Positions 6,736 through 63,967 of a DNA stretch of 64,000 nt are shown piece by piece; within the stretch, counting starts at the first letter, position 1; the number at the start of each line of letters is the position of its first letter. A program made the position numbers and the translations under genes. The notes below the pieces were generated by a model that saw only the letters and a list, made by a program, of their open reading frames with translations, had not been told where the DNA came from and did not search any database. Location: the sequence record MK327931.1; one strand, written 5' to 3'.

Positions 6736-6821
6736 TCACTTCGTTCTCTCGTAACTCAAGAAGTCACTGCGTTTACTTCGTAAACTAGTTCCTTCTGAAA
6801 ATGATAATGTACTTTAAAAAC

Positions 6822-7351
6822 TTGACGGGATTTGTTGAGGACTATTACATCCCCCCGCAGGGGAATGAAGGTAATAAAAAAGAGACAATTAAGTCTCTCT
6901 TGACGATGATGGCATCGGATATTATCGAATTGCGAATTTCTCAAATTTTGGACGGATCTTTCTTGTACCAAAATTTAGAGAGCGAAAGCGGGTTGCTCGG
7001 TTTCTCTCTATCGCAGTCATATGCAACGGTCGCTGGTCTTTTCATCAACAGCACTCAGTACTAACTCTATTCGATCAAAGTAGTACTTGTTCTCAAATTT
7101 TGGACGCAACTTTCTTGTAAAAATTGCGTCCGCTATTCTTGAACTCCCTTAGCAAATCTGGTAAGGTGCGAACCTTATACATCTATCTAGGAACTCTCTG
7201 TATGCTTATCGGAGTTCTTTATACAGCCGTGTCGCCGTGATTCGTGGTCTTACATCGTGTTTGTTTGAATGCCAGTACTCTAACAGGTTTCTTCTGCTGT
7301 TCGCTACAACGGTAAAGCTCATCTATCCTTTACATTTTCAAGAGAAGTAGG
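6822..7351. ncRNA. Putative large structured non-coding element, copy 1 (~530 nt)
   Basis: Intergenic; collinear identical blocks with 62883-63349; many hairpins; compensatory changes; no conserved reading frame. Confidence 0.7.
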
Positions 7352-7396
7352 TTCTCAGTGTCCATTTTTCAATGTCCGTTGTCATTTTCTATATAC

Positions 7397-22989: not shown

Positions 22990-23460
22990 TTAAAAATCTT
23001 TATTTTTATATAGTATTCTTTGATTATTTGAACCACGGAAAGGTAATTTTAAATTCTTTTCGGACTCGATAAACTTACCATCAACTAATACATCTAAGTA
23101 CTGAAGTATATCTTTAGCATGATTTTTCATAATCTCATCTAAAGTATACCCACTCCAGCACCAAATAGTTTTACTAGGATAAGTTTCTTTAACTACTTTG
23201 CATAGATTTAAAACTTCATCTATATTCTTTTTCATTAATGGATCGCCGCCTAGAAGTGACAAACCACTAACATATGGTTTTTTTAGTTCCTGTAGTATAA
23301 TCTCAACTGTTTCAGTACTGAACTCTTGTCCACTTCGGTAGTCCCATGCTTCTTCATTGAAGCAACCATCACATCCGTGCGAACACCCACTAACAAATAA
23401 AGAGCAGCGAACGCCCTCTCCATTTACTAAATCATCCTTGATTATCGTCTGGTAATTCAT
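22990..23460 (-). CDS. nrdG: Anaerobic ribonucleotide reductase activating protein (radical SAM)
   Basis: NGEGVRCSLFVSGCSHGCDGCFN, GGDPL, FRGSNNQR. Confidence 0.97.
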   Translation of the reverse strand: MNYQTIIKDDLVNGEGVRCSLFVSGCSHGCDGCFNEEAWDYRSGQEFSTETVEIILQELKKPYVSGLSLLGGDPLMKKNIDEVLNLCKVVKETYPSKTIWCWSGYTLDEIMKNHAKDILQYLDVLVDGKFIESEKNLKLPFRGSNNQRILYKNKDF

Positions 23461-23764
23461 CTAATATTGCACTCACTATTTCGACAAGAACATCGCCGTG
23501 ACATGATTTTGGTTTACAGAAACAACCAAGGCGTTTCCCTGCGAGTTCAAGTAATTCATCAATCTTAACTTCTCCACAAGAAATACGTTCAATAATGTAT
23601 TCTCTGAATTTTTCAATTGATTCTTCTCTTGTACTAACAATGAATTCGGCTTTAGTTTGTTTATCTTTAATATGGGTAAATGGGTTTCCCCATTTAGACC
23701 CACGTCCAATATACACATCATACGGTTCTTTGTATTTGTTAACCACAATTGGCTTTAAATCCAT
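23432..23764 (-). CDS. DUF4326-like protein
   Basis: YDVYIGRGSKWGNPF ... LGCFCKPKSCHGDVL. Confidence 0.85.
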   Translation of the reverse strand: MDLKPIVVNKYKEPYDVYIGRGSKWGNPFTHIKDKQTKAEFIVSTREESIEKFREYIIERISCGEVKIDELLELAGKRLGCFCKPKSCHGDVLVEIVSAILDELPDDNQG

Positions 23765-35331: not shown

Positions 35332-36086
35332 TTCATACGTTCCTTAATTATAGTCTCTAGATGCGGTATTGCTTTGGTTGCTGGCTTGATAACTTTTTCA
35401 TTAAACAAAAAATCATTATCATTTTTACGAATGTTAACATTAACACTATAACATGGTAATGCTGCTGCTAATCTCGACCATACCAGTACTGTATCGCTAC
35501 TACCAATTACAATAACTGTATCATTTTCATTAAGAGATTTCAACACATTATTTCGTTCTTCGTAAATTGGTAAGCGAATACCATCAACATAACGATGATA
35601 TTCTCCAATCATTACTACATTTGGTTTAGCAAAAACATCATGTTTTGGTATGTATGGTTCGTATCCGCAGTTAATAACATTATAATCATCGGAATTGATA
35701 CTATAATTTTCAATAACTTCGCACAAGTTTCCATGAAGTTTAAGCTCATGACCACCAATACGAGTATAAAGATCGTCCATGTTAGAAGTCATATGAAGGA
35801 AGCAATCACCATATTGATCTTCTAACGATTTTATAAAATAATGCATTGCATTCGGTTCGCATTGTCCCAATTTTACACGTAATGTATTATAGAAAGAATG
35901 AACAACATGATATTTTGTAGTTAAACTAGCAATGTTACATACATCATTAATTTTAAATGTATCCCACAAACCATCATCAAATCGAAAAGGTTCCATACCA
36001 CTTTCAACAGAAAGTCCTGCACCTGATATAATCAGTAATCGCTTTTTACCTTCATTGCTTATAAATTTTTCTGATATCATATTCAA
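35328..36086 (-). CDS. Sir2/CobB-family NAD-dependent protein
   Basis: ISGAGLSVESG..FR..GLW, TSNMDDL, LHGNL, KPNVV, IGSS. Confidence 0.9.
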   Translation of the reverse strand: MNMISEKFISNEGKKRLLIISGAGLSVESGMEPFRFDDGLWDTFKINDVCNIASLTTKYHVVHSFYNTLRVKLGQCEPNAMHYFIKSLEDQYGDCFLHMTSNMDDLYTRIGGHELKLHGNLCEVIENYSINSDDYNVINCGYEPYIPKHDVFAKPNVVMIGEYHRYVDGIRLPIYEERNNVLKSLNENDTVIVIGSSDTVLVWSRLAAALPCYSVNVNIRKNDNDFLFNEKVIKPATKAIPHLETIIKERMK

Positions 36087-36283
36087 TCCTTATAAAAAAC
36101 AATTAAATATATTGATAATAACAGAATGATTCCAATATGATAGGCATACATAAAATTATTATCTTTGTGATAACCATTGGATTTCAAGTCCCTATATAAG
36201 CATTTAGCATTGTTATAAATTACAACAATAGAAAAAACTATAAAAAAACTCAAAACCCATTCATAAATTGTGTATGCCATCAT
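36083..36283 (-). CDS. Small membrane protein
   Basis: Two hydrophobic helices. Confidence 0.55.
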   Translation of the reverse strand: MMAYTIYEWVLSFFIVFSIVVIYNNAKCLYRDLKSNGYHKDNNFMYAYHIGIILLLSIYLIVFYKD

Positions 36284-36310
36284 CTATTCTCTCTTATAAT
36301 ATTAGTACTT

Positions 36311-36904
36311 TTAATATTTTAAAACATCAAACTCTTCGCTTACGNNNNNNNNNNNNNNNNNNNNNNNNNNNNNNNNNNNNNNNNNNNNNNNNNNNNNNNN
36401 NNNNNNNNNNNNNNNNNNNNNNNNNNNNNNNNNNNNNNNNNNNNNNNNNNNNNNNNNNNNNNNNNNNNNNNNNNNNNNNNNNNNNNNNNNNNNNNNNNNN
36501 NNNNNNNNNNNNNNNNNNNNNNNNNNGATTGTATGATTGTGGAGAATGATAAATTGTCCACCTCCTACATCTTGTGATGCATCTCGTGCACCCCATTCTT
36601 CTTTAAACATTTGACGAATAATTGGAATAACTTTAAGAACCAAATATTGTGAAAATGTTTGACTAGCATCTTGTTCAGGTAAATTAAGGTTATAATTTAA
36701 CAACTGACCCATACGAAATGATGTAGTATAACCCAATGCCATTACTTCTTTAGTTCTAGTTAGTCCATCATCATGTAACTTGATAAATTCTTTCTCGAAT
36801 ACCTTTGGCTCAGTTTGAACAGTTTTTGTAAATCCATTGCTTCCTAACTTATCCCCAGCAATAAAAGAACTTACTCCGTCAGTGTGTGCAATAATACAGG
36901 TCAT
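36311..36904 (-). CDS. HslV/proteasome-beta-like Ntn hydrolase (partly N-masked)
   Basis: Start MTCIIAH...IAGDKLGSNG exposes an N-terminal Thr; GYTTSFRMGQLL. Confidence 0.7.
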   Translation of the reverse strand: MTCIIAHTDGVSSFIAGDKLGSNGFTKTVQTEPKVFEKEFIKLHDDGLTRTKEVMALGYTTSFRMGQLLNYNLNLPEQDASQTFSQYLVLKVIPIIRQMFKEEWGARDASQDVGGGQFIILHNHTIXXXXXXXXXXXXXXXXXXXXXXXXXXXXXXXXXXXXXXXXXXXXXXXXXXXXXXXXXXXXXVSEEFDVLKY

Positions 36905-37161
36905 AAAATAGCTCCAATTGCAAATAATGTTGTGTATAAGATATAAATTAGTGCTCCTAACAACATTAGGCACACCAAGTATGAAGTTGATAGTACATAA
37001 TAAATTATTGCTTCGAATTTTGAATTGAACTTCATTGTAGTTGAATCAATAAAGCCATTACGATAATCTTTGTAAATGAAAACTGTTAGAAAAATAACTG
37101 TAGCATACATTACTACAGTAGCATAAAAAATAATAGATGTCAAGTTTTGGATGTTTGTCAT
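36901..37161 (-). CDS. Small membrane protein
   Basis: Two hydrophobic helices. Confidence 0.55.
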   Translation of the reverse strand: MTNIQNLTSIIFYATVVMYATVIFLTVFIYKDYRNGFIDSTTMKFNSKFEAIIYYVLSTSYLVCLMLLGALIYILYTTLFAIGAIL

Positions 37162-37231
37162 AGTTATATAATCTCAATATAATTAATAACAAAGGAAGTA
37201 CATCATAATCATCCTGTTATTTTAATTATTT

Positions 37232-37855
37232 TTATTGTTTGACTGAACCGTAAAAAACCAGTTCTGGTTTTGTTAATATTACAACATCTTCACCACGAGA
37301 ACGACTAACTCTAAATAGAACTTCTGGTGGGATTCCATTTGCTGCATATAGTGAAAAAAGGAAACCTACCTTTGTTGCCATTTCTTCGGTAAAAGTTGAT
37401 AACTGTCTTACAGACACAAATGAATTATCACCATCAGTAACATTACTTTTAATCGAAATGTTATGAAGACCCAGTACTGAGCGATTTGTCATATATCGCT
37501 TTTCGGGAGATACACTAAAGAATACCACAGTACATGCTGAATTGCAATACCTAGAAACAATTAAATTTATCCCATTGTCTCTAACAAAGTTTGCCATTCG
37601 AATACCTGCATCAAAATCACCACCAGGAGATGTAATTGTGATGGTATCATAGTGTTCTTTATCATACAACTCTATCATACGCTTGAGTGACCCATCTGTA
37701 ATATCTGATATGAAATATACATTTCGGGTTTCAGGATTATACTTTATCACATTTTTACTTTCAATACCAGCACTGGCTGGAAAATTTATTAACAATAGAA
37801 ACATTGCTGCTTGTATCACTTCAAGCCATAGTCTTTTCATATAACAAGTCCTCAA
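37232..37855 (-). CDS. Exported ClpP/crotonase-fold protein
   Basis: Signal peptide; ITSPGGD, CNSACT, VLGLH. Confidence 0.7.
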   Translation of the reverse strand: MRTCYMKRLWLEVIQAAMFLLLINFPASAGIESKNVIKYNPETRNVYFISDITDGSLKRMIELYDKEHYDTITITSPGGDFDAGIRMANFVRDNGINLIVSRYCNSACTVVFFSVSPEKRYMTNRSVLGLHNISIKSNVTDGDNSFVSVRQLSTFTEEMATKVGFLFSLYAANGIPPEVLFRVSRSRGEDVVILTKPELVFYGSVKQ

Positions 37856-37966
37856 TTTTGTTTAGGAAGATATAAATAATATAGTACTTAAACACTTAAG
37901 TCAAACTTTTTCTGTACTTAACTCAAATTTTTAAAAATAAAACTTAAGGTGTACAGTTTATAACAG

Positions 37967-37995
37967 ATCATATCATACCACTGATGTTTTGTCAA
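37967..37995 (-). promoter_or_regulatory. sigma70-like promoter
   Basis: TTGACA-N17-TATGAT. Confidence 0.7.
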
Positions 37996-38065
37996 CTAGT
38001 TCATGGTGCATCTGATGTAAAAAACAAATATATTTCATACTTATATTTAAAAAAGGAAATAAAAT

Positions 38066-38443
38066 ATGAAAGCTATCGCAGCACAAGGTAAACTACCATT
38101 CAATATCGGCGGGTTTTGTGTAACCGCAGCTAATATAAACGGTGAATTGAAATATAACTTGAACATCTTTAATCAACGTTCTAGTTGTGTTTACGATCTC
38201 ATTGATACTGATTTTAATGTTTATCGTTTTGTAACTATCACTAGTTATGATAAAGATAAAATTAGATTAGATGCATCTAAAACAGCATTGGAAATTGCAC
38301 CAACTCTAGCCAAAAATACTTTTTGTATTAAGATTGACGATAGTGCATTTGCTGAATCATTCCAGTTTCATAAAATTAAATTGAGTACTGGGGCGATGAA
38401 ATATCACCCTTGGGATTTGTATTATTGCAACCTCCCAGGTTAA
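38066..38443 (+). CDS. Hypothetical protein, only credible plus-strand gene
   Basis: AAGGA SD, fills a gap with no minus-strand gene, followed by a bidirectional terminator. Confidence 0.75.
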   Translation: MKAIAAQGKLPFNIGGFCVTAANINGELKYNLNIFNQRSSCVYDLIDTDFNVYRFVTITSYDKDKIRLDASKTALEIAPTLAKNTFCIKIDDSAFAESFQFHKIKLSTGAMKYHPWDLYYCNLPG

Positions 38444-38444
38444 C

Positions 38445-38472
38445 AAAAAAGGAGCCTTGTGGCTCCTTTTTT
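38445..38472. terminator. Bidirectional terminator
   Basis: AAAAAAGGAGCC-TTGT-GGCTCCTTTTTT between convergent genes. Confidence 0.85.
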
Positions 38473-38729
38473 TATTCTACAGTATTAAGCTTCTGACAAA
38501 TCATATCAGCTTCTACTNNNNNNNNNNNNNNNNNNNNNNNTCCAAATCTACTTGTTACCCTTTTCTCACTACGGTGTATACAGTTTACAATATAGTACTT
38601 ATTATTTTGTGCAGAAAAACGAACTTCATAATTTCGAAAAGAAGTATTAGGTTCATCCATAGCAACTATATATAACATAAAAATAAAAAACACTGTTATT
38701 AGAAAAGCAATAATAATTATTACTGTCAT
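38472..38729 (-). CDS. Hypothetical membrane-anchored protein (partly masked)
   Basis: N-terminal TM. Confidence 0.55.
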   Translation of the reverse strand: MTVIIIIAFLITVFFIFMLYIVAMDEPNTSFRNYEVRFSAQNNKYYIVNCIHRSEKRVTSRFGXXXXXXXXVEADMICQKLNTVE

Positions 38730-39202
38730 TTATCAAGACCCTTATCATAAATGCAATTAACAATAATTNNNNNNNNNNNNNNNNNNNNNNNNNNNNNNNN
38801 NNNNNNNNNNNNNNNNNNNNNNNNNNNNNNNNNNNNNNNNNNNNNNNNNNNNNNNNNNNNNNNNNNNNNNNNNNNNNNNNNNNNNNNNNNNNNNNNNNNN
38901 NNNNNNNNNNNNNNNNNNNNNNNNNNNNNNNNNNNNNNNNNNNNNNNNNNNNNNNNNNNNNNNNNNNNNNNNNNNNNNNNNNNNNNNNNNNNNNNNNNNN
39001 NNNNNNNNNNNNNNNNNNNNNNNNNNNNNNNNNNNNNNNNNNNNNNNNNNNNNNNNNNNNNNNNNNNNNNNNNNNNNNNNNNNNNNNNNNNNNNNNNNNN
39101 NNNNNNNNNNNNNNNNNNNNNNNNNNNNNNNNNNNNNNNTTGTGAAATACATTTACTTTCCTCAGCAACTACTTCTGCTATCTTCAACCAAGTCGTATGT
39201 TT
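38726..39202 (-). CDS. Probable dCMP deaminase (mostly N-masked)
   Basis: MKHTTWLKIAEVVAEESKCIS matches the T4 cd-type N-terminus; catalytic motifs hidden by Ns. Confidence 0.6.
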   Translation of the reverse strand, partial: KHTTWLKIAEVVAEESKCISQXXXXXXXXXXXXXXXXXXXXXXXXXXXXXXXXXXXXXXXXXXXXXXXXXXXXXXXXXXXXXXXXXXXXXXXXXXXXXXXXXXXXXXXXXXXXXXXXXXXXXXXXXXXXXXXXXXXXXXXXXXXXIIVNCIYDKGLDK

Positions 39203-39686
39203 CATTATAAGCTCCAATACTTAACAATGCGTTTTTACACAAATCATGAATTTTCATAACTCGAATATAGTTTAACACATCTGTTTCATTAATTTCAAAT
39301 GGTTTATCTGCATATGTAGACCACGTTTGATTTAATTCAATAACAAATGTAATTTTATCTGTATCCATAATATTATCACAAAATCTACGAAAATCTTGCT
39401 CTTCATCGGAAAGTCTGAAATTTAAATCATTTTTTAAACCATTAACTGTGAAGCAAATACCAGTACTGTAACCGATGCAAATATCTTCAATATCATATAA
39501 TCCATAAATTAATTTAGAGATAAACGTGCTATATTTGTTTCTATGATAATAGTTTAATATTTCTTGTTTAATATTAATTTCAATATCAGTAGTTTTTTGT
39601 AATGTAAGTTTAATTAATTCTAATGTCTTGATTATGTTATCTAACCAGATATTAGTATCATCTATACTTAGGTGTGTGTATTTCAT
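39162..39686 (-). CDS. Hypothetical protein
   Basis: Packed ORF. Confidence 0.6.
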   Translation of the reverse strand: MKYTHLSIDDTNIWLDNIIKTLELIKLTLQKTTDIEINIKQEILNYYHRNKYSTFISKLIYGLYDIEDICIGYSTGICFTVNGLKNDLNFRLSDEEQDFRRFCDNIMDTDKITFVIELNQTWSTYADKPFEINETDVLNYIRVMKIHDLCKNALLSIGAYNETYDLVEDSRSSC

Positions 39687-62222: not shown

Positions 62223-62765
62223 TTAGAGACAGTTGTGTACTATCTTATCAAAAGTACTACTGTCAATGTTATATTCATATAAAAATTTAAAATGTGAACC
62301 GTAACGCATCATCAGATTAAACTCTTCTTCAGTATTGAACTTGTAATCATGAATAGTCTCAGGGGTACATTTTAAACCCAAGAACTCTATAATTTCAGAT
62401 GTTACATCATATCCTGAATTGAAGTATTTAACCCAAACACATTTTCCTTGTGGGTTGTATTTTCTATATTCTCCTTCTAGTTCTCCTTTAATAATATGAG
62501 CCTTAACACTTATTGAATTATTACTATATCTTTCTTCAAAATAATTACCATACTGGGCTTTTGATATTGTTGGTTTTTGAGTAGGAAGTAATTTAACTGA
62601 AGTTACTTCAATTCCATTTTGTAATTCCTTTATATAAGAAATGCATCCTTTTTCTTTAATAACCACATATCCAGTAAAGATATCTTCGTCTTGTGATTGA
62701 TTAATGCAATCATCAAAATTCAAAGTTTTATAAGTAACAGTTTTTTCTTTTCTAATAAATGCCAT
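62223..62765 (-). CDS. Hypothetical protein with MORN-like segment (start MAFIRK)
   Basis: GELEGEYRKYNPQGK; first minus-strand gene following element copy 2. Confidence 0.65.
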   Translation of the reverse strand: MAFIRKEKTVTYKTLNFDDCINQSQDEDIFTGYVVIKEKGCISYIKELQNGIEVTSVKLLPTQKPTISKAQYGNYFEERYSNNSISVKAHIIKGELEGEYRKYNPQGKCVWVKYFNSGYDVTSEIIEFLGLKCTPETIHDYKFNTEEEFNLMMRYGSHFKFLYEYNIDSSTFDKIVHNCL

Positions 62766-62882
62766 CATTATTCCTATGGAAACATCAATGAATATACGTG
62801 ACGTTGATTGCATCAACATCAGTAGAATTATCATGCTACGCATGTCTAATTCTACACAAGTACTATTTTCTTTTAATTAATA

Positions 62883-63349
62883 TTGACGGGGTTTGCTTGA
62901 GCATATTTCATCCCCCCGCAGGGGAAAGAACAAAAAAATTTGACGCTGGTGGCCTTCACATAGTTCATATCACGAATTCTCTTACGAGACGAAAGCGGGT
63001 TGCTCTGTTTCTCTCTATCGCGGTTCTTGTAGCAACGGTCGTCGGTCTTAAACATCCCGACACATAATACAAATACCATATGACCAGTACTTGTATTTGA
63101 TTTCACAAAATTTGGACGCAACTATATTGTATAATTCCGACCGCATATTTCTTATGAAATCTCCCTTAGATAATTGGTAAGGTGCGATCCTTATATGTCT
63201 ATCGAGGAACTCTCTTTATCCTATTGGAGTTCTTTATACAGCCGCATTGCCGTGAGTGGTTCAAACTATGCCATCATCTAACGGGTTTCATCTGCTGTTC
63301 GTACTGAAAGGACTACTCATCTACCCTCTACATTTTCGAGTGGATTAGG
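62883..63349. ncRNA. Putative large structured non-coding element, copy 2 (~467 nt)
   Basis: Collinear homology with 6822-7351 and compensatory changes. Confidence 0.7.
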
Positions 63350-63385
63350 CTTTTAATCATTTCCTTATGGGAACCTTTCAGGATT

Positions 63386-63420
63386 AAAAAAAGGTGACTA
63401 ACATATTATGTTGTCACCTT
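63386..63420 (-). terminator. Rho-independent terminator
   Basis: AAGGTGAC-AACATAATATGTTA-GTCACCTT + T-run. Confidence 0.7.
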
Positions 63421-63422
63421 AT

Positions 63423-63450
63423 ATTATATCATTAACTTATCATTTGTCTC
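63423..63450 (-). promoter_or_regulatory. GAGACA-N16-TATAAT promoter upstream of element copy 2
   Basis: Same TGA-TATAAT class as 7397. Confidence 0.55.
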
Positions 63451-63967
63451 AGTTATATTCGGTTTTTTCTGTGAAATTTGTTAGTATATCAACACTAAAA
63501 CTTCGAATAACCTCAATCCTGCTTGGCATGAAACGATGTTTATTTTTAATATACAACTCATCATCTTCAATAAAAGACGTAAAAATAAATGTCATATCTT
63601 CACGTGGAATTTGTAAAATATCACACATTTCATTTGCCGATGCTACTGGTGAATCGTTGTAGTACTGAGAGTATGCACTAGATTGGCGACCGATTATAAT
63701 AGAATTTCTGATTAGAAAATTACTACAGTACTGAAAATCTTTGTAGTACTTTTCAATAATGTAAGGCATAAGTGCTTCTTTCACGTCTTCATAACCATTA
63801 GTACTATCAATTGCTATACAGTAATCTTCACGTTCTTTTTTCTCATGATGGTAATCATAAACATACTCAAAGAATGAATTTTTATTTAATGAATCATTTA
63901 AACCAACTGACCCACTATAGTATGATTTTCTATCATTCATTCGATCATCTGGGCATGATGCATACAT
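63449..63967 (-). CDS. Hypothetical protein (probably extends beyond window)
   Basis: Open frame at right edge. Confidence 0.6.
   Translation of the reverse strand: MYASCPDDRMNDRKSYYSGSVGLNDSLNKNSFFEYVYDYHHEKKEREDYCIAIDSTNGYEDVKEALMPYIIEKYYKDFQYCSNFLIRNSIIIGRQSSAYSQYYNDSPVASANEMCDILQIPREDMTFIFTSFIEDDELYIKNKHRFMPSRIEVIRSFSVDILTNFTEKTEYN

Follow-up and report, generated by a model that had tools for sequence, protein, structure and literature searches.

A large, multi-copy structured RNA carried by jumbo phages

Giant phages of enterobacteria, together with a few bacterial defence islands, carry a roughly 540-nt, intricately folded non-coding RNA gene that matches no catalogued RNA family and whose function is unknown. 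The element studied here is one of four to five diverged copies, and it lies in a 64,000-nt stretch of DNA (sequence record MK327931.1, referred to below as the window) from a 121Q/G17-type jumbo coliphage of the genus Asteriusvirus. It is encoded on the minus strand, has its own promoter, and is followed by a second conserved hairpin region. The 701 bases around the element are 100% identical to Escherichia phage vB_EcoM_G17 and phage Sharanji and 99.7% identical to phage 121Q, jumbo myoviruses of 350-370 kb, and G17 was used as a proxy for the whole genome. Nearly all long ORFs in the window are on the minus strand. In G17 the locus is an unannotated gap of about 680 bp between a gene for a 284-aa hypothetical protein and a hypothetical/Dam methylase/cytidylyltransferase cluster, and this synteny is kept in Munch, GAP32, CBB, BF, XbC2, Kaldavass, fENko-Kae01 and EJP2.

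The element was brought to attention by a first-pass annotation made from the sequence alone, which described 62883-63349 as the second of two copies of a large structured non-coding element, homologous to 6822-7351. That observation proved to be real, and the element is larger than described. The two stretches align block for block in the same order, with 78% mean column identity over the two intergenic regions; the shared promoter box is present on the minus strand of both copies, and the terminator hairpin placed after it exists. The GAACTC/GAGTTC and TAAGG...CCTTA hairpins that had been pointed out are helices P6 and P7 of a covarying structure found across the family, and the further copies that were suspected do exist. 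The reading of the element as large, conserved, structured and non-coding, with selection acting on each copy, is likewise supported. What was not supported is the proposed end-to-end closure between a 5' GGGT and a 3' ACCC: in 54 copies no register gives consistent pairing, and the GGGU belongs to the local hairpin P2. The annotation also missed the folding strand, the true 5' and 3' extent (it gave 467 nt), the pseudoknot, the downstream hairpin region and the copies in bacterial defence islands.

Evidence that the element is a structured RNA comes from compensatory base changes. RNAalifold applied to 29 copies predicted 70 pairs, 47 of them with compensatory double changes, and an all-against-all column scan of 54 phage copies (median pairwise identity 64%) yielded 20 helices comprising 85 pairs, of which 95.5% are canonical and 63 show double changes. 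The covariation score of this model, computed in Python, is 0.59, compared with 0.20 (maximum 0.22) in 300 column permutations and 0.07-0.12 when the partner column is shifted by 1-3 positions. As the sequences are related, the permutation control overstates significance, but the shift control keeps relatedness and is equally clear. G·U pairs outnumber A·C pairs 345 to 56, which identifies the strand read from the promoter as the folding strand. The strongest single helix is a 7-bp pairing between the loop of hairpin P9 and a single strand about 115 nt downstream, which is 98.7% canonical with all seven pairs covarying; this is a pseudoknot, or possibly an intermolecular kissing contact. A random distribution of the differences between the two window copies relative to the predicted stems had been named at the outset as an outcome that would count against the structural reading; instead, the copies differ by compensated changes in P1, P2b, P3, P8, P9, the pseudoknot, P12 and P14. 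The folding energy of the single sequence is not significant (z = -1.49) and is uninformative by itself. The sequence is non-coding, as each of the 54 copies has at least three stops in every frame, with no open frame conserved among them, and 10 of the 13 indels between the two window copies are not multiples of three. The positions of the features are collected in Table 1.

Table 1. Features of the structured RNA locus and of its second copy, in window coordinates
Position (strand)	Feature	Supporting observations
63446..63451 (-)	-35-like hexamer TGAGAC of the phage promoter class TG(G/A)GAC(A)-N14-TGnTATAAT; overlaps the TGA stop codon of the upstream gene	8-9 of the 14 minus-strand TGnTATAAT sites in the window have a TGGGACA-like box at the same distance; the box is kept upstream of the phage copies and most bacterial copies
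63423..63431 (-)	Extended -10 box TGATATAAT; predicted transcription start near 63416 (inferred, not mapped)	Box conserved upstream of nearly every aligned copy
63386..63420 (-)	Hairpin GGUGAC...GUCACC plus U7; terminator of the upstream gene, just downstream of the -10 box; specific to the copy-2 orthologue group	Annotated as a terminator in the 100%-identical G17 record; orthologues keep it with compensatory changes; its effect on the RNA's own transcript is unexplained
62880..63416 (-)	Copy 2 of the structured RNA: conserved core, 537 nt from the predicted start	Full-length nhmmer matches; family alignment and RNAalifold; 20 helices mapped to window coordinates; RNA-library contigs on 62835-63392
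63238..63381 (-)	5' domain: P1 (63381-63377/63308-63304), P2/P2a/P2b hairpin (63348-63321), P3, P4 (63298-63294/63242-63238), P5 and the near-invariant CACGGCAAUGCGGC	Column scan and covariation
63099..63232 (-)	Central domain: P6 (GAACUCC/AGAGUUC), conserved GAUAGACAUAU, P7 (UAAG/CUUA), conserved CUAAGGGAG, a variable insert and P8	RNAalifold and covariation
62955..63102 (-)	3' core domain, the most conserved part: P9 hairpin, CGACCGUUGC, P11-P14 and GAUAGAGAGAAACAGAGCAACCCGCUUUCG	Covariance model of the 3' core (R1): 111.9 bits, E = 7e-24
63078..63084 (-)	Loop of hairpin P9 (GUCAUAU), 5' half of the 7-bp pseudoknot or kissing helix; partner 62964-62970 (AUAUGAA)	7 pairs, lowest canonical fraction 0.96; copy 1 has AUCGAAU/AUUCGAU
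62912..62925 (-)	3' hairpin UCCCC-UGC-GGGGG with the near-invariant G-run, followed by AUGAAA	Family alignment and RNAalifold
62883..62888 (-)	Second CGUCAA motif, at the 3' end of the core; the first is at 62940-62945	Both replaced together by ACGAAG in the divergent metagenomic lineage; motif density 0.58 per 100 nt in the 3' part plus downstream region, against 0.10 in the rest of the RNA
62803..62855 (-)	Downstream conserved region, degenerate in this copy: hairpin GUAGAAUUA...UAAUUCUAC with a GCGUAGCAUGA loop, then hairpin GUUGAU-GCA-AUCAAC; first gene starts at 62765 according to the G17 annotation	Family consensus GAAUUGAG / ACGNAGUGA loop / UUCUUUGA-stem-GNA-stem-GCAAU, with five compensatory stem variants
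6819..7390 (-)	Copy 1 of the same RNA (572 nt); promoter TGGGAC 7425-7420 plus TGATATAAT 7405-7397; downstream region with AACGCAGUGA (6773-6764) and AACGAAGUGA (6745-6736)	R1: 117.7 bits at 6914-7092

Nearly every aligned copy carries a promoter of the class TG(G/A)(G/A)AC-N14-TGnTATAAT, which looks like the phage's general promoter type for host polymerase, although that it is an early class is our inference. About half of the phage copies have a terminator-like hairpin with a U-run roughly 60 nt before the conserved 3' end, after which come the near-invariant CCCC-loop-GGGGGG hairpin and ...CAAAUCUCGUCAG. Conservation continues about 80 nt beyond the core, to about 62800 in copy 2. After an AU-rich spacer there is a hairpin whose loop has the consensus given in Table 1 in 46 of 54 copies, and this is followed by UUCUU(U)GA-stem-GNA-stem-GCAAU, found in 28 of 54 copies with a strict pattern. 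The short motif CG(U/A)(C/A)AG is six-fold enriched in the 3' part plus this downstream region.

No Rfam 15 family matches the element. No covariance model reached its gathering score in the 64-kb window, and with E values up to 10 on both copies only chance-level hits (27 bits or less) were obtained, none of them inside the conserved core of copy 2; the families scanned include ROOL, GOLLD, HEARO, OLE, raiA, group I/II introns, RNase P, tmRNA, 6S and RNAI. ARAGORN found no tRNA or tmRNA in the window. Full-text literature searches found no paper describing the element, though they were not exhaustive and a prior description elsewhere cannot be excluded.

The element occurs in 3-5 copies per genome in Asterius-, Mimas-, Eneladus- and Alcyoneusvirus. 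G17 has four copies, all on the minus strand, at 65.1, 176.1, 254.8 and 310.9 kb, the last two being the window's copy 1 and copy 2, while Munch, GAP32, CBB, BF, fHe-Yen9-04, XbC2, XaC1, Kaldavass, fENko-Kae01 and EJP2 each have five full-length copies on one strand. A blastn search found the element in 62 of 50,697 phage records, all of them jumbo phages of enterobacteria or plant pathogens, and a bacterial query raised this to 71 records by adding Klebsiella phages. A covariance-model search had been suggested beforehand as a check, and we built the model R1 of the 3' core from 45 sequences and 143 positions. It recovers both window copies at 112-118 bits and finds three strong copies in RaK2 and in K64-1 (Alcyoneusvirus), but nothing convincing in PA5oct, Atu_ph07 or XacN1. 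A 19-base degenerate motif from the core hits 59 places in IMG/VR, all in contigs of 345-378 kb or in fragments from the same samples, and 92 places in metagenomes.

In a maximum-likelihood tree the copies group by genomic position and not by genome; the copy-2 group, for example, holds G17, EJP2, Kae01, Munch, XbC2, Kaldavass, GAP32, Yen9-04 and BF. The paralogues therefore predate the split of these genera, and each has been kept since, at about 60-65% identity with the structure intact. The XaC1 copies cluster together, as do the RaK2 copies. A second, more divergent lineage occurs in metagenomic phage contigs with 42-44% GC that encode a portal protein and a Dda-like helicase. This lineage has the same promoter type and 3' core and a different 5' domain, and in it both CGUCAG motifs are replaced together by ACGAAG.

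Single copies are also found, rarely, in integrative defence islands of Enterobacterales, usually just downstream of a large serine recombinase. A motif scan of one genome per species gave 15 hits, of which eight are true by R1 (105-120 bits): two Serratia, Silvania, Enterobacter chinensis, an Enterobacteriaceae isolate, two MAGs, and a 2.8-kb contig binned as Clostridium. Each bacterial genome has one copy. None was found in 150 other Enterobacterales species sampled, and two of 5,426 complete E. coli genomes carry one. The bacterial copies are full-length and keep most of the promoter and the downstream hairpins. In E. chinensis and Silvania the order is nadC, then the island (helicase-DarT-DarG, small resolvase, LprI, 286-aa protein, HTH_35, cI-like repressor, RNA, large serine recombinase), then ppdD-hofBC; in Serratia sp. 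2723 it is arsC, then large serine recombinase, RNA, ... HamA-HamB; in S. fonticola it is recombinase, two ParB/RepB-like genes and RNA, then rof and tilS; and in E. coli LR-29-1 the copy is in an island beside ffs with PDC-M45. The neighbouring cargo is DarTG, Hachiman and PDC-M45. Five metagenome contigs also carry a large serine recombinase upstream of the RNA, about 400 bp away in four of them and about 2.7 kb away in the fifth. The island copies in Enterobacter, Silvania and the two Serratia converge with the next gene. A related recombinase/cI island in S. fonticola has a DUF4238 gene in the same slot, so that the RNA behaves as exchangeable cargo, and the E. coli copy nests inside a phage paralogue group, which suggests transfer from phage to island. 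No partner protein shared by islands and phages was found: the island proteins have no homologues in the flanks of the phage copies apart from an unrelated DUF4326 match, and the 286-aa island protein has no match in five jumbo genomes and no convincing Pfam, NCBIfam, PHROG or PADLOC family.

In four RNA-library runs from two studies (wastewater metatranscriptomes and 'whole organism' transcriptomes), contigs concentrate on the element and include a 287-nt contig with no differences and whole contigs of 350 and 377 nt. The stretches 62413-62814 and 63393-63618 are almost empty, and more distant genes are patchily covered. This fits an abundant discrete RNA, but contigs give neither ends nor strand nor level, and DNA carry-over is possible, so that these data do not settle whether the element is transcribed as a discrete species. 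Support for a stand-alone unit is provided by G17 copy 3 (176097-176570, minus strand), which sits between plus-strand genes, and by the convergent island copies.

We consider that the locus is a gene for a large, ornately folded non-coding RNA that acts in trans in phage-host conflict, a reading to which we assign a probability of about 0.55. The analysis itself establishes the promoter, the fold of the minus-strand sequence into at least 20 conserved helices in three domains tied together by the 7-bp pairing, the absence of coding capacity, the inheritance of promoter, core and downstream hairpins as a unit by jumbo phages of several genera and by a few bacterial integrative islands, and the stand-alone arrangement of several copies. 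The rest is inference: that the transcript itself is the product, that the near-consensus extended -10 promoters suggest host RNA polymerase makes it early and in high dose from several copies, and that it would then act as a compact RNA particle or RNP, possibly a homo-oligomer held by the paralogue-specific 7-bp helix. Such a particle would bind or sequester a factor in the conflict between phage, host and other mobile elements, and the repeated CGUCAG/ACGNAGU motifs in its 3' part would be the contact sites for that factor. We favour this reading because the structure is elaborate, some units are stand-alone, the RNA-library contigs lie on the element and the module behaves as cargo in islands. 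Several features sit less easily with it. Besides the lack of a shared partner protein and of measured transcript ends, strand or abundance, the even, syntenic spacing of the copies, all on one genome strand, would not be needed by a purely trans-acting RNA, nor would the conservation that runs past the core into hairpins with repeated short motifs; both fit a DNA-level or cis role. The terminator-like hairpin before the conserved 3' end in half of the phage copies leaves the position of the mature 3' end unsettled, and in copy 2 a full terminator hairpin lies right after the promoter. The function is unproven.

The main alternative, which we regard as less likely, is that each module is a replication origin fired by transcription, in which the structured transcript would form a persistent RNA-DNA hybrid near its G-run and the AT-rich spacer and would prime DNA synthesis, resembling ColE1 RNA II or the T4 oriF/oriG R-loops. 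The downstream hairpins and repeated CGUCAG/ACGNAGU motifs would serve as priming or protein-binding sites, and the islands would carry the module as a Rep-independent origin, or to be amplified or to interfere during jumbo-phage infection. In GAP32 the copies lie at 35, 99, 178, 262 and 341 kb of 359 kb, and by our calculation a smallest gap this large has P of about 0.005 for five random points on a circle, although the genomes share ancestry and this is roughly one observation. The orientation of all copies on one genome strand, even where the local genes are opposite, the promoters, the near-invariant G-run, and the conservation beyond the core into hairpins with iterated short motifs also favour an origin, as do the lack of a recognisable replication initiator in the islands with the module, one of which has two ParB/RepB-like genes beside it, and the position of copy 3 next to the endonuclease VII and gp46/47-like recombination genes. 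Against this, twenty covarying helices and a pseudoknot are far more structure than known primer RNAs need, many copies have a terminator-like hairpin upstream of the supposed hybrid site, and the related island with a protein-coding gene in the same slot indicates that the module is dispensable cargo there. No antisense RNA I signal was found, as RF00106 gave no hit in the Rfam scans. GC skew is flat across the 56 kb between the two window copies, with no inflection at either, but this test is weak in a phage transcribed almost entirely in one direction and leaves the matter of an origin undecided; replication itself was not assayed.

A role as a cis-acting 5' leader of the downstream early genes, such as a processive antiterminator that modifies RNA polymerase (like HK022 put or EAR), an mRNA stabiliser or a riboswitch-like sensor, is very unlikely. 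Copies 1, 2 and 4 do lie promoter-proximal, upstream of long runs of co-directional genes, the conserved hairpin region reaches almost to the next start codon, and terminator-like hairpins lie inside or beside the element. However, G17 copy 3 is antisense to both of its neighbours, the convergent bacterial copies have nothing downstream to regulate, the genes downstream of the five paralogue groups are unrelated to each other, and the size and complexity far exceed those of known antiterminator RNAs. A leader as a general role was rejected because some copies have no co-directional downstream gene. That the element is a non-functional repeat, a decayed mobile element or an overlooked protein-coding gene, as the small hypothetical ORFs annotated across it in several deposited genomes might imply, is refuted to our satisfaction by the stops in all frames and the compensatory substitutions in stems, and is further contradicted by the retention of the paralogues across genera and the absence of terminal inverted repeats and of a transposase.

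Among described systems, ROOL (RF03087) and GOLLD (RF01998) are also RNAs of about 0.5-0.8 kb with many covarying helices and long-range or loop-mediated pairings, carried by phages and prophages, with function unknown. They form RNA-only homo-oligomers (bioRxiv 10.1101/2024.12.08.627333), and a helix like the 7-bp loop-strand pairing could likewise be intermolecular, although the sequence alone does not tell whether the helix forms within or between molecules, and oligomerisation was not assayed here. There is no sequence or structure match to them, and the present RNA differs in its Enterobacterales jumbo-phage hosts, as opposed to Lactobacillales, rumen or lake organisms, in its 3-5 diverged paralogues per genome, in the lack of tRNA genes in the window, and in its copies in serine-recombinase islands. 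OLE, HEARO/omega RNA, raiA and other large bacterial non-coding RNA classes share large size and highly conserved unpaired motifs between covarying helices, and were found by comparative genomics before any function was known; OLE, however, has OapA-C and HEARO has IsrB, while no conserved adjacent protein gene was found here, the recombinase adjacency holding only in the islands. As in ColE1 RNA II and the T4 R-loop origins, a promoter drives a transcript of about 550 nt with a G-run near its 3' part, followed by AT-rich DNA and hairpins, and T4 has several origins in one phage genome; the structure here is far more elaborate and more conserved. In PA5oct, a distantly related jumbo phage, RNA-seq found four ORF-less, strongly transcribed loci of 236-619 nt (ncRNA001-004), two of which make up 2-5% of phage reads (PMC7318152), similar in number and size to the copies here. 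An nhmmer search found no similarity in the region holding ncRNA001 and ncRNA002, and R1 searched over the whole PA5oct genome gave only a 23-bit hit at 137.8 kb, away from all four annotated ncRNAs, so that homology is not shown. The HK022 put and EAR RNAs are likewise promoter-proximal structured RNAs upstream of long gene arrays in phages or operons, but are 5-8 times smaller, and copies of the present RNA exist with no co-directional downstream gene.

A more speculative possibility, which we consider doubtful, is that this is a new class of large ornate RNA that jumbo phages express from several ancient paralogues as a self-assembling RNA particle, with the paralogue-specific 7-bp 'code' keeping the assemblies homotypic. 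In this view bacterial defence islands have captured the same gene, placed it in a defence-cargo slot next to their serine recombinase, and express it as an RNA decoy that interferes with jumbo-phage infection. If so, it would be an RNA-only immunity gene derived from the phage's own essential RNA.

The element is a strongly supported, previously uncatalogued family of large structured RNA. Large, highly structured RNAs of unknown function are rare, OLE, GOLLD, ROOL, HEARO and raiA being the main examples, and each of these has led to new biochemistry, including RNA cages, RNA-guided nucleases and membrane RNPs. The recognition of this family also corrects the annotation of dozens of deposited genomes that place hypothetical ORFs across it. 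The RNA sits in cultivable E. coli, Salmonella, Klebsiella and Erwinia phages that are already used in phage-therapy work, has an alignment of more than 100 natural variants with a well-determined secondary structure, occurs in 3-5 separately deletable copies, and has natural 'transplants' in bacterial defence islands. It therefore gives a direct experimental handle on what ornate phage RNAs do, and on how jumbo phages that depend on the host RNA polymerase organise early infection or replication.

The core of each copy of the RNA is followed by a second conserved structured region, which lies downstream of both copies in the window and was also present in the bacterial island copies. This region consists of a hairpin with an ACGNAGUGA loop, followed by UUCUU(U)GA-5-bp stem-GNA-stem-GCAAU, in which the stem shows compensatory variants. 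The motif AACG(A/C)AGTGA occurs in the window only at the two positions listed in the table, both of which fall within the region downstream of copy 1. The short "hypothetical protein" ORFs that deposited annotations place inside the RNA, in many deposited relatives and up to six per locus in some records, are very likely spurious.

A phage promoter class was also identified in the window, in which a TGGGACA-like box lies 14 nt upstream of an extended -10 box (TGnTATAAT). There are 14 TGnTATAAT sites on the minus strand and two on the plus strand. In the copy-2 orthologue group, the terminator hairpin of the upstream gene lies immediately downstream of the RNA's own -10 box, such that a transcript initiated from this promoter would begin with a complete terminator; whether this attenuates the copy, or whether the start lies inside the stem, is unexplained. 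The related phage G17 encodes two putative sigma factors. RNA copy 4 of this phage lies directly downstream of one of them, while RNA copy 3 lies beside the endonuclease VII and gp46/47-like recombination nuclease genes, with the second sigma-factor gene beyond them. Elsewhere in the window, there is a region in which the G+C content drops to 0.25–0.28, compared to 0.32–0.35 in the remainder, and this region holds some of the few plus-strand ORFs.

Coordinates of the additional features in the window and in related phage genomes
Feature	Sequence	Position	Strand
Second conserved structured region, downstream of copy 2	Window	62766-62879	
Second conserved structured region, downstream of copy 1	Window	6736-6818	
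AACG(A/C)AGTGA	Window	6736-6745; 6764-6773	
Promoter class, first base of TGnTATAAT	Window	63431, 57344, 53458, 49574, 47312, 41858, 32622, 7405, 1622	minus
-10 box of copy 2 and terminator hairpin of the upstream gene	Window	63386-63431	
Region of low G+C	Window	about 36000-39500	
ORFs in the region of low G+C	Window	38066-38443; 38751-39224	plus
Short ORF annotated inside the RNA (equivalent to G17_00407)	Window	6909-7064	
ORF with identity to the E. coli LR-29-1 island DUF4326 protein	Window	23432-23764	
Putative sigma factors of G17 (loci L269, L268)	G17 record	65689-66654; 180422-181261	
Weak hit of the R1 model, 15.7 bits (locus L090)	RaK2	81068-81182	
Weak hit of the R1 model, 23.3 bits (locus L085)	PA5oct	137811-137896	

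Bacterial islands were examined at loci from Enterobacter chinensis (L265), Silvania (L266), Serratia sp. 2723 (L267), S. fonticola (L162/L264) and E. coli LR-29-1 (L258). These loci are small integrative islands that are bounded by a large serine recombinase and that carry DarTG, Hachiman (HamAB), PDC-M45 or DUF4238 cargo. The slot between the recombinase and a cI-like repressor holds either the RNA or a protein gene, and a 257/286-aa protein with no family match is shared by three of the islands. The product of one ORF in the window is 42% identical over 100 residues to the DUF4326 protein of the E. coli LR-29-1 island.

Searches with R1, the covariance model of the 3' core, also returned weak hits in phages RaK2 and PA5oct that were not confirmed by nhmmer, and these may be either degenerate remnants or chance matches. 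A divergent lineage of the RNA was found in other phage contigs with 42–44% GC, recovered as ENA metagenome contigs (L187, L194, L203, L229, L231, L232, L241, L242 and L200). This lineage has a different 5' domain but the same 3' core, and carries ACGAAG in place of both CGUCAG motifs. The divergent RNA occurs in several distinct genomic contexts, suggesting that it too is multi-copy.
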